DNA of 64,000 nucleotides, from positions 1 through 64,000 of IMG/VR virus record IMGVR_UViG_3300046513_000348; one strand, 5' to 3'. Made by a program: the position numbers and the translations under genes. Below, piece after piece: positions 1,499-28,155 of the stretch. Position 1 is the first letter of the stretch. Every line of letters starts with the position of its first letter. Under the pieces are notes generated by a model, which did no database searches, was not told the DNA's origin, and saw only the letters and a program-made list of their open reading frames with translations.

Positions 1499-2758
1499 TT
1501 AGAAGCTTGGAGCGTTGCCGAGCTGGTACGCTTTCAACATATCGGTGATCGAAGCGCCTTCCTTCTGGTTGGCGGCACGGCATTCGCGGATCGACAGATC
1601 CGAAGCGGTCGGGATGTCGGTCGTGTAGAACTTCACGCGGTCGTATTCCGGATCGATGACGGCCACGATGAACAGGCCGGTTTCGTCGAACAGCTTCTGG
1701 CGAACACGGAAGTCGTCGAACTTGCCGCCGATTTCCAGTTCCACCTTCTTGATGGTTTCGACCGTCGTCACCACCAGGTTGGTCGAATTGGCCACCGAAG
1801 GATTCAGCGACAGCATGGCCGAGATCTTGTTGTTACGACGCTGGGAAGCCACCGCCGTGTAGATGCCGGTGTTGTCGCGCATCAGGTTCTTCTTGTGCTG
1901 CTTCACCAGATCGCGAGCCGTCAGCAGGTCGACCAGATTGATCTGACCCGAGCGATACTTGATCCAGCGATTGGCGACGCTGTTGTCGACGTTGCCGGTC
2001 GAGAGCAGTTCCTTCAGCAGGTTCGGGACCATGACCGATGCGTTCAGGCGAATCATGATCGGGATGGTGCGCGACTTGTTGTCGTTCGAGATTTGCACCT
2101 CGAGGATCTTGCCCACGGACAGGTTCGACGCTTCCTTGATGACTTCCAGGGAACGCGATGCGAGACCGCCCGGTTCCATCAGGTTCTTTTCGTTCTTGTC
2201 GGCAGTGATTGCGCGCTGGATGTCGTTCTTCATGCCCTTGGCAGCATCCTGCACTGCACCTTGAACGATCTTTCCGGTACGCTTCTCGGCTTCGTCCATG
2301 ACCGCGTCGAGAACGCCACGGGTAGGGATCTTATTGACGGCACGGCCATTGCTGATGGCGCCGTTCGATTCGAGCGAAGGCATGCCGCCGAACTTCGGCA
2401 GTTTGTGCGCATAACCTTCGTTGGACATCATCCAGATGGCGCCGGCGGAGTCGAGCGCACTGTCGCGAACCGAGCGGTTCGGGTTCAGTTTGTCGAGATG
2501 GCGCGCAACGGCGATGTTGTCGATCGACGCTTGCAGCATATTCCAGGCCAGCAGATAGTATGCCGAAAAAGCCGAATGCAGGGACTGTGTCACTACCGGC
2601 GTATGTTCGTAGAAGATTACGCTGGAGTCAACGATGAGCGTTGGCTCTACCCGGGTGGGGCGTGTGTAATCGACGTACGAGTTGGCGGCGCCAGATCGCA
2701 GACCATCGATTACCTTGCCGGCCGTAACCAGGCCGGCTTCTCCAATTTTGTCAAGCAT
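1499..2758 (-). CDS. Internal head/inner-body protein (phiKZ gp89-like)
   Basis: 419 aa; S-x-E sites (SNE, SLE) of the type cut by the phiKZ-family prohead protease; divergent from the baseplate pair as in phiKZ. Confidence 0.6.
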   Translation of the reverse strand: MLDKIGEAGLVTAGKVIDGLRSGAANSYVDYTRPTRVEPTLIVDSSVIFYEHTPVVTQSLHSAFSAYYLLAWNMLQASIDNIAVARHLDKLNPNRSVRDSALDSAGAIWMMSNEGYAHKLPKFGGMPSLESNGAISNGRAVNKIPTRGVLDAVMDEAEKRTGKIVQGAVQDAAKGMKNDIQRAITADKNEKNLMEPGGLASRSLEVIKEASNLSVGKILEVQISNDNKSRTIPIMIRLNASVMVPNLLKELLSTGNVDNSVANRWIKYRSGQINLVDLLTARDLVKQHKKNLMRDNTGIYTAVASQRRNNKISAMLSLNPSVANSTNLVVTTVETIKKVELEIGGKFDDFRVRQKLFDETGLFIVAVIDPEYDRVKFYTTDIPTASDLSIRECRAANQKEGASITDMLKAYQLGNAPSF

Positions 2759-2790
2759 GATTTTTACCTCGGGATAACAGGACTTTAAAA

Positions 2791-4086
2791 GTGGATAACA
2801 GATTAGATCTAACCATTGACCAGATCTATAAACTCGGCAAGAAGGGTTCTGAAGACCTTCAAGCGGGACTCGAACGTGTGTACAACTCCACGCCCTTGGG
2901 TCCCTTGCCGAGTAACATAGTAAATACCGTCTATGGTATCAACCATCGTCAAACTCAATTGGCTTTGCCGTTTAACCGTGATGGTTTCGGCTTGACCTTT
3001 TTTACGCGGCCTCGCATGAACTTGACCACGAACAATATTCGTTTTGTGCGTCAGATGTACCCATTACTGAATACTGAGCCGCGTTCGATCCAGCGTATCA
3101 TTCGTACTACTCTCGATCCGCTGATTGCCTATGGGTCCGACCCAAGAAACAAAGAAATCAAATCGCCCTATGTGGACGACTTGAACATGTTTATTCCACT
3201 GCTGACGAACCTCTGTCTGACCATCTCAGGATGGCCTGATTTCGTCGTCGATACTCGCACAACGCCCGAGGGTCATTACCGAGAAGCGCACAGCATGGTC
3301 GACAGCAGTGTTGAAATTAAGAACACATACGAATTGTCGGCGTCCTTCCGGAACATACCGAATAATCCGGTCACATTATTGTTTTATTTCTGGTTGTTCT
3401 ACATGTCGAAGGTTTTCGAAGGGGAACTCATCCCTTACGGCTCTTCGCTGTACGAATGCGAGATGGATTACAATACCCGGATCTACCGTCTGATCCTCGA
3501 TCCGTCGAAGCGATACGTTCAACACATCCTGTCCACTGGTGCAGCATTCCCGCTTAATGCCCCGGTGGGCGCCCTGGGTAACTTTGACAGCACCCAGCCC
3601 TTCAACGATGCAAACGACAACGTGAACATTCGTTTCCAATGCATCGGCATGGATTACAACGATCCAATTCAGATCACGGAATTCAACCAAGCAGTGGCTA
3701 TCATGAACCCTGCCATGGCCGACGACGTTCGTGATGATTATCTCATCCAAATTCCTTACCAGGTCCTGTCGTTCTTCAATATGCGTGGTTATCCACGTAT
3801 CGACCCTTCGTCGATGGAACTGCAGTGGTATATCTCGTACTCCGTGTTCAAGTCGTATGCCACTCAACTGGCGGAAGTCTCGAACCTGAACGGTATGCGT
3901 AACCTGGCGTTCCTCGACTATATTTCTCCAGGGCAGCAGCAGGATTATAGGAAGAGCCTGGCTGACATGGAAGGTGTTCCCATGAACTCGAAGGATGGTG
4001 GCTTGATCACTACGCCTTTGACGGGAGAATACAGCCAGGAACAAATTGAACAGGTAAGGGCTTACTTCACAGGTGGTGGAAAATAA
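2791..4086 (+). CDS. Virion baseplate/tail-tube-like structural protein (phiKZ gp88-like)
   Basis: 431 aa, GTG start; FFTRPRMNL motif; coupled (TAATG) to the next large structural gene. Confidence 0.55.
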   Translation: MDNRLDLTIDQIYKLGKKGSEDLQAGLERVYNSTPLGPLPSNIVNTVYGINHRQTQLALPFNRDGFGLTFFTRPRMNLTTNNIRFVRQMYPLLNTEPRSIQRIIRTTLDPLIAYGSDPRNKEIKSPYVDDLNMFIPLLTNLCLTISGWPDFVVDTRTTPEGHYREAHSMVDSSVEIKNTYELSASFRNIPNNPVTLLFYFWLFYMSKVFEGELIPYGSSLYECEMDYNTRIYRLILDPSKRYVQHILSTGAAFPLNAPVGALGNFDSTQPFNDANDNVNIRFQCIGMDYNDPIQITEFNQAVAIMNPAMADDVRDDYLIQIPYQVLSFFNMRGYPRIDPSSMELQWYISYSVFKSYATQLAEVSNLNGMRNLAFLDYISPGQQQDYRKSLADMEGVPMNSKDGGLITTPLTGEYSQEQIEQVRAYFTGGGK

Positions 4087-26856: not shown

Positions 26857-27132
26857 TTATCCCTGATTCATGAGTGCAATAAGTTTTTCGAAGAACTGCT
26901 TCCAGGTGGGGAAGTGTTCATCGGGAATGGAGATTTCGAGTTGTTCCTCGAGCTCCGTCGTAATATCCATGTAGTCCAGCGAGTCCACGGAGTCCGTCAA
27001 ATTCTTTTCGAGGAATGCGCAGAACTCTTCGCTGTTATCTACAGCAGACTTGCGCACAACCTTCGGGTCATAAGACGAGACAACCAGGACCAGGACTCGT
27101 CGCGCGCGCTGCGCATTCGTTGCCGTTGGCAT
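26857..27132 (-). CDS. Acyl carrier protein-like protein
   Basis: 91 aa, acidic; DSLDYMDITTELEEQLEISIPDE matches the ACP signature DSLDxxELxxxLEExFxIxIPDE; GAGG RBS. Confidence 0.75.
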   Translation of the reverse strand: MPTATNAQRARRVLVLVVSSYDPKVVRKSAVDNSEEFCAFLEKNLTDSVDSLDYMDITTELEEQLEISIPDEHFPTWKQFFEKLIALMNQG

Positions 27133-27237: not shown

Positions 27238-27265
27238 CTCCAGGATACCCTGAGGTATCCTGGAG
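27238..27265 (-). terminator. Hairpin terminator or processing stem
   Basis: 12-bp perfect stem CTCCAGGATACC / GGTATCCTGGAG. Confidence 0.65.
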
Positions 27266-27275
27266 CTTCCTCTTT

Positions 27276-27590
27276 ATCTGAACTCCCGTGTCGGCCCAAT
27301 TGGCCCCGCGGTCAGCCGCATCCAGCACAAAGGCAGGCGCGAGCAGCAGGCGGAGGCAAGGCAGTCACTGACTCTCCAGTAGTGGCTGGAGAGTCGCTAG
27401 GCGATTGGCGGCCTAATCGGAGAGGCGGCCCAACCTAGAGCAACACGGCGCGGTATAGGAATCATCATCGAGGACTATCCTACCCGCAAACGTACACGGG
27501 AGTTTCGTGGGCCTTTCACCCAACCGTAACAGAGACTACCCGCCGGGTAATCGCGCTACGTTTCCGGACTTGAACCGGTCATCAGCAGAT
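27276..27590 (-). ncRNA. Candidate structured ncRNA with a hammerhead-like core
   Basis: No credible ORF; nested helices, four with G-U wobbles on the minus strand; CUGAUGA, GAAAC, 10-bp stem III, GUU and 5-bp stem I in type I hammerhead order. Confidence 0.6.
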
Positions 27591-27592
27591 TT

Positions 27593-27967
27593 CTAGCTTA
27601 TCACTACGAGTGGCAGAATACCGTATCCCCAATTCGGCGCCACAACCGCAGCGATTGCAAATGCGACCTTGCAGATCACATGGAATAACTGGTCTTCCTT
27701 GAACGTAATGAAGTTCCGGCATTTCGCATCGTCGATGAGGAAGTGCAGGAACAGTTCTACGAGACCCAACCACAGGCTTCCCGTAATGAACCAGACGCCG
27801 CCTGCATGGATGACACTGTGCCAGAAGAGAACAATGTACCAGTCAATGCCAGGGAACGGCGTATTACGATTCTTGGCTTTCGCCAGGAAGTCGTTTTGGA
27901 GGGGATAGTCGGCGAGTGCGTGCCAGAACATCAGGGCAGCAAACACCACGAAGAACGGATACATCAC
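27593..27967 (-). CDS. DUF3307-family membrane protein
   Basis: HALADYPLQ...HSVIH...LHFLIDDAK His/Asp pattern in TM helices; GAGGTGA RBS. Confidence 0.8.
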   Translation of the reverse strand: MMYPFFVVFAALMFWHALADYPLQNDFLAKAKNRNTPFPGIDWYIVLFWHSVIHAGGVWFITGSLWLGLVELFLHFLIDDAKCRNFITFKEDQLFHVICKVAFAIAAVVAPNWGYGILPLVVIS

Positions 27968-28081: not shown

Positions 28082-28155
28082 TGGAGCGGGAACCGAGAAT
28101 CGAACTCGAGTGGGAGGCTTGGAAGGACTCCGCTTTACCACTAAGCTATCCCCGC
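28082..28155 (-). tRNA. tRNA-Gly (anticodon TCC) with encoded CCA
   Basis: Cloverleaf: acceptor GCGGGGA/TTCCCGC, D arm GCTT/AAGC, anticodon loop CT-TCC-AA, T loop TTCGATT, discriminator U, CCA. Confidence 0.95.

Follow-up and report, generated by a model that had tools for sequence, protein, structure and literature searches.

The window analysed here is a 64,000-nt stretch of a jumbo phage, identical to part of the 218,660-bp IMG/VR contig IMGVR_UViG_3300046513_000348, and encodes a split RNA polymerase beta subunit. The nearest cultured relatives of the phage are the Ralstonia/Burkholderia Chiangmaivirus phages RSL2, RSF1, FLC6 and others, at about 43% protein identity, and a search of IMG/VR for closer relatives returned only its own contig. 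Genes around the locus run on the minus strand. Between a DUF3307 membrane-protein gene and an acyl-carrier-protein-like gene lies a 315-base non-coding stretch, 27276-27590, that begins 2 nt after the stop codon of the former and ends about 145 nt before the latter. The features of the locus, all on the minus strand, are as follows.

28082-28155 (-), tRNA-Gly(UCC), about 490 nt upstream of the element
27593-27967 (-), upstream gene, DUF3307 membrane protein (Pfam PF11750, E = 1.4e-9; phrog_2470)
27586-27590 (-), stem I, 5' strand, AUCUG, pairing with 27276-27280
27579-27585 (-), hammerhead core C3-A9, CUGAUGA
27564-27578 (-), P2a, a 4-bp hairpin with a 7-nt T-loop directly after A9, CCGG-UUCAAGU-CCGG
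27525-27560 (-), P2.1, a lineage-specific nested hairpin in the P2a-P2b linker, CGUAGC../..GUUACG
27508-27522 (-), P2b, the hairpin UGGGU-GAAAG-GCCCA, a proposed D-loop analogue
27503-27507 (-), an invariant C (27507), then G12-A13-A14-A15.1 (GAAA, 27506-27503)
27494-27502 (-), stem III, 5' strand, CUCCCGUGU, pairing with 27283-27291
27292-27493 (-), a multi-hairpin domain of about 200 nt in the stem III loop
27282-27291 (-), stem III, 3' strand, ACACGGGAG, plus U16.1
27281 (-), H17 (U), with predicted cleavage between 27281 and 27280
27276-27280 (-), stem I, 3' strand, CAGAU
27238-27265 (-), a 12-bp hairpin starting 10 nt after the predicted cut
26857-27132 (-), downstream gene, acyl-carrier-protein-like, 91 aa (phrog_31629; weak PP-binding match), syntenic with RSL2 ORF196

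The initial annotation proposed a type I hammerhead ribozyme with large insertions in arms II and III, and every element it listed is where it was placed. Counting the A15.1-U16.1 pair, stem III is 10 bp, with ACUCCCGUGU at 27503-27494 pairing with ACACGGGAGU at 27291-27282. The MFE fold of exactly 27276-27590 on the minus strand reproduces all of these helices at -137.7 kcal/mol (z = -3.1), compared to -121.5 (z = -2.0) for the plus strand, and with the 12-bp hairpin included z = -5.3. No ORF of 40 aa or more lies on the minus strand between 27329 and 27581. The composite motif (CUGAnGA, T-loop hairpin, 30-60 nt, UGAAARG, 4 nt, CGAAA) occurs once in the window and in 0 of 100 dinucleotide shuffles. 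The 12-bp hairpin was read as a terminator in the initial annotation, but this is not supported: it has no U tract on the minus strand, and it scores as terminator-like only on the plus strand, where the tail is CTTCCTCTTT, opposite to the local direction of the genes.

Rfam 15 models, including the hammerheads, group I intron, GOLLD/ROOL, HEARO, YrlA and others, give nothing at E <= 10 in the region, in RSL2 or in compact members of the family described below. The T-loop prompted a search for a tRNA, tmRNA or permuted tmRNA, but ARAGORN and Rfam call only the tRNA-Gly. Direct DNA searches of 50,697 phage records found no similarity for the element or for 16 kb around it, and relatives were reached through a flanking protein.

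The syntenic stretch of RSL2 is unannotated and carries the same design: GGCUU-CUGAAGA, a T-loop hairpin, a long hairpin, CGGGU-GAAAG-GCCCG, C-GAAA, an 8-9 bp stem III around about 170 nt, U-U, then AAGCC. All 11 Chiangmaivirus records have it. RSF1 has GGCGU/ACGCC in stem I and CAGGU/GCCUG in P2b, both compensatory, and stem III of the window copy covaries with the Chiangmaivirus copies (UACACACG/CGUGUGUA etc.). Just upstream of the element in RSL2 (designated L001 here; L numbers denote the individual sequences examined), a 1.33-kb ORF rich in Ala, Pro and Gln at 1586-2919 (+) is unannotated in the RSL2 record but is annotated as a hypothetical protein in those of FLC6, RSF1 and RsoM3USA. 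Downstream, at about 3269-3440 (+), roughly 170 nt of conserved, structured, ORF-free sequence lies between the predicted cut and a canonical intrinsic terminator, and cleavage would release it as a small RNA with a 5'-OH end.

A scan of IMG/VR for the P2b-plus-CGAAA string alone returned seven loci, and every one also carries CUGAnGA and a T-loop hairpin in register. Broader patterns added more viral and metagenomic loci, although the metagenome was scanned only for compact forms. Parsing separates the hits into two clean groups, with about 25 distinct sequences having both arm II hairpins intact and a background of chance hits having neither. One real member is the cultured Pseudomonas phage PaBG (L096, NC_022096), which grows on PAO1. 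Its compact 77-nt copy (about 2459-2535, plus strand; the same as L004:3424-3500) sits in a 1.5-kb unannotated stretch between gp317 and a cluster of four tRNA genes. The PaBG tRNA-Ala(UGC) at 3190-3283 (+) is unusually long for a tRNA-Ala at 94 nt, suggesting an insertion or an intron. A scan of one genome for each of 185,579 bacterial and archaeal species gave 12 pattern hits, none of them real by the covariance model.

Compact members are only 63-89 nt. They consist of the 5-nt stem I 5' strand; CUGAnGA; P2a, a 3-4 bp hairpin with loop U-K-C-R-A-G-U; a linker of 3-6 nt or the extra hairpin P2.1; P2b (N-G-G-U, GAAAR, G-C-C-N); an invariant C; GAAA; stem III, which is 2-10 bp across the family with a loop of 3 to about 200 nt; U, then one nucleotide; and the 5-nt stem I 3' strand. 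Stem I is 5 bp in almost every member and is usually preceded by an A. On an alignment of 18 compact members, 94% of cells are paired, compared to 26-48% when the partners are slid, and 15 of 21 pairs show changes on both sides. These include 5 of 5 pairs in stem I, 4 of 7 in stem III and 3 of 5 in P2b, and the P2a stem also covaries. RNAalifold predicts the same four helices independently. The A15.1-U16.1 pair is A-U in 17 of 17 aligned compact members. When U-H was no longer required before stem I and the spacer was left free at 0-4 nt, 22 of the 23 members for which a solution was found place exactly one nucleotide between stem III and stem I (U 11, C 10, A 1, never G), whereas chance hits scatter over spacings and bases.

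Conservation of CUGAnGA, the T-loop consensus and CGAAA is partly imposed by the broader search patterns. However, CUGAnGA is present in all members, including those found with the P2b-plus-CGAAA string and those found by BLAST, and when the T-loop is left unconstrained the same loci come back. Dropping the T-loop or the P2b constraint recovered no additional real members, and hence the core, the T-loop hairpin and the GAAAR hairpin always come together. Two members, L016 (3280-3343, minus) and L058 (31-103, plus), have an intact 5' half but no convincing stem III or stem I 3' partner nearby, and may be decayed copies or may close over a long range.

A covariance model built only from compact copies of other phages hits the window at this site alone, at 47 bits (E = 5e-12), and finds all members at 50-90 bits. 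It closes the window copy on a weaker local alternative of stems III and I, because it cannot span the 200-nt loop; the long-range closure is the one that is perfect here and that covaries in Chiangmaivirus. A second, weak hit of the model (25.6 bits) lies at L048 68-119 (-), about 1 kb from the main copy on the same short contig.

Arm II appears to be a tRNA-elbow-like module. The G-C closing pair of P2a is invariant in 31 of 31 sequences although it was not imposed by the search, and the loop fits the T-loop consensus U-N-C-R-A. The two loop positions that the search patterns left free, T-loop position 2 and P2b loop position 5, covary without exception in 31 distinct sequences (U with G in 12, G with A in 19), with mutual information of 0.96 bit, just below the Watson-Crick pairs. 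The state switches between close relatives (RSL2 and RSF1; PaBG and L015; L061 and its neighbours), with at least 3 independent switches, so this is not one inherited event. The register is R then G in P2b opposite N then C in the T-loop, which would correspond to G18-G19 opposite Psi55-C56 in the tRNA elbow. The G and the T-loop C that follow are both invariant and therefore uninformative, and the contact itself is inferred.

The arm II "insertion" of the initial annotation is not peculiar to this copy: the T-loop hairpin plus GAAAR hairpin is the invariant signature of a whole family, and only the nested hairpin between them is lineage-specific. At the position of P2.1, which is 36 nt in the window, many compact members have nothing, PaBG, L015 and L036 have a 3-4 bp GAAA hairpin, and Chiangmaivirus and L017 have a different hairpin of 36-46 nt. 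The G-C pair taken in the initial annotation as equivalent to 10.1-11.1 is not conserved in relatives. The first P2a pair is variable and is mismatched in 7 of 18 members, and the C before G12 is invariant but has no identified partner.

The stem III domain of about 200 nt aligns with the Chiangmaivirus insert and is shared only with that group. The common motifs are UCUCGA, GGCCGCCUCU...GCCGCC, AGUGA(C)UGCCU and GGCC, and the GGCCGCC...GCCGCC motif is not found next to any other member. Two other long members, L017 and L035, carry unrelated inserts. No homology was detected by blastn or by motif search between this domain and the long ORF-poor stretches downstream of compact members. Within such stretches, L002 and L015 share a block of about 56 nt (82% identity) about 75-140 nt downstream of the predicted cut, which may belong to a further non-coding RNA whose 5' end the ribozyme makes.

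The element always lies between genes on the coding strand and often abuts the upstream stop codon. In several compact members the purine-rich stem I 3' strand doubles as, or sits just before, a Shine-Dalgarno site. Flanking genes are unrelated to each other (ligase, NAD synthase, beta-helix protein, unknowns). Same-strand tRNA genes lie within about 1.3 kb of the element in five lineages (window 28082-28155, minus; L096 1123-3738; L002/L006/L033; L015 1787-1864; L072 5046-5132), and in L072 the tRNA is only 63 nt upstream, but none lies near the compact members from the Ga0315... metagenomes.

Taken together, the interval probably encodes a cis-acting, type I hammerhead-type self-cleaving ribozyme of a previously unrecognised structural subclass, although catalysis is inferred from comparison and not from cleavage data. 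The covariation in stems I and III that the initial annotation named as the test is present. The core is canonical (C3-A9, G12-A14, A15.1-U16.1 and H17), and stem II is replaced by P2a and P2b, whose loops are inferred to dock on each other like the T-loop and D-loop of a tRNA elbow. This rigid module would take over the role of the stem I/stem II tertiary contact in other natural hammerheads, packing against the 5-bp stem I, although stem I has no loop or bulge for the usual contact. During transcription the 5' half would fold first, and after the stem III domain has been made, the 3' strand of stem III and CAGAU would close the junction, although the roughly 200 nt separating the two strands of stem III could slow or gate folding. 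The 2'-OH of U27281 would then attack its phosphate, leaving the upstream RNA (the DUF3307 mRNA plus the ribozyme) with a 2',3'-cyclic phosphate and the downstream RNA with a 5'-OH ten bases ahead of the 12-bp hairpin, which would form its 5' end structure, and the 5-bp stem I would melt. The likely use is to split a phage polycistronic transcript, which in several jumbo phages also carries tRNAs, into separately stable pieces; the consequences for RNA stability are likewise inferred.

It is possible, but considered unlikely, that cleavage in this copy is conditional, gated by the folding or the ligand/protein state of the stem III domain or by alternative pairings. Conservation of this domain between the window and Chiangmaivirus, with invariant single-stranded motifs, suggests a function of its own. 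Chiangmaivirus copies (about 2986-3015, plus strand, in L001, and the equivalents in L009-L013) can also form an alternative 7-bp hairpin, GCUUCUG/CAGAGGU, that would sequester the stem I 5' strand and C3-G5 and was preferred by RNAalifold on the long-form alignment, and the window has its weaker local closure. However, compact members lack any such domain and L017 and L035 have unrelated inserts at the same place, so the loop looks like a permissive insertion site; the alternative hairpin is not conserved outside Chiangmaivirus, and no known aptamer matches. A non-catalytic RNA, such as a tRNA-elbow mimic or protein-binding 3'-UTR element that descends from or converges on a hammerhead-like junction, is doubtful as well. 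The non-canonical stem II region, the lack of an Rfam hit and the nearby tRNA genes would fit this reading, and the elbow-like module could be bound by tRNA-recognising factors, but an RNA that only needs to be bound has no reason to keep all core nucleotides, a single non-G nucleotide at position 17 and a stem I of exactly 5 bp across lineages whose helices have otherwise turned over completely.

A chance resemblance, or a generic stable 3' UTR or terminator structure, is suggested by the GC-rich, stably folding sequence at the end of a gene followed by a strong hairpin, but is effectively refuted by the shuffles, the covariance model hit, the covariation across about 25 lineages and the spacer analysis, and the hairpin lacks a minus-strand U tract. 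A more speculative and improbable possibility is that the elbow is a true tRNA-elbow mimic read by the tRNA machinery (RNase P, T-loop modification enzymes, or other elbow-binding RNAs or proteins), which would couple self-cleavage in jumbo-phage tRNA-region transcripts to tRNA maturation or to evasion of tRNA-directed host defences. In this case the conserved stem III domain would be a separate functional ncRNA whose 3' end the ribozyme makes.

The arm II and the A9/G10.1 metal site of the hammerhead are textbook features, and a family that keeps the catalytic core but drops the G10.1-C11.1 pair therefore tests which parts of the fold catalysis actually needs. The inferred elbow would be a new natural solution to stem I/stem II docking. 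The family also shows that current covariance models miss whole hammerhead subclasses in phage genomes, supplies compact candidates for structure work and for RNA devices, and marks a putative RNA-processing site in jumbo phages (PaBG, Chiangmaivirus) whose transcript maturation is little known. Literature searches, which were not exhaustive, found no T-loop, elbow or branched-arm-II hammerhead and no ribozymes in these phages.

Type I hammerheads (Rfam RF00163 and related models; Perreault et al. 2011, PMC3088659) have the same order of elements (stem I, CUGAnGA, arm II, GAAA, stem III, U-H, stem I), the same core nucleotides, A15.1-U16.1 and a non-G at position 17, and many bacterial and phage hammerheads likewise occur in intergenic regions. 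In the present family, arm II is a junction of two or three hairpins instead of one helix, there is no conserved G10.1-C11.1 equivalent, stem I is a bare 5-bp helix with no loop, bulge or pseudoknot partner, and Rfam models do not detect it. Core insertions, weak stems and 10.1-11.1 mismatches are described in natural hammerheads (PMC3088659), but no branched arm II is mentioned in the passages retrieved, nor is it part of the definition.

The tRNA elbow, with its G53-C61, U54-A58, G18-Psi55 and G19-C56 contacts, would be matched by the closing pair and U-N-C-R-A-N-N loop of P2a and by the R-G of P2b, but there is no acceptor or anticodon arm, and the G/A variant of the contact is not the tRNA pair. 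The CChMVd hammerhead, which appears to carry an extra base after A9, and the discontinuous mammalian hammerhead (Martick et al. 2008) set precedents that the A9/10.1 junction tolerates extra nucleotides and that enzyme and substrate strands can be hundreds of bases apart. Those are single-lineage oddities, while here the arm II elaboration is a conserved, covarying module that defines a family. Non-circularly permuted hammerheads (type SGC etc.; PMC10085705) are another recently recognised architecture that standard models missed, identified through the CUGAnGA motif plus covariation. Those change the order of the core blocks, whereas this family keeps type I order and changes the architecture of arm II.
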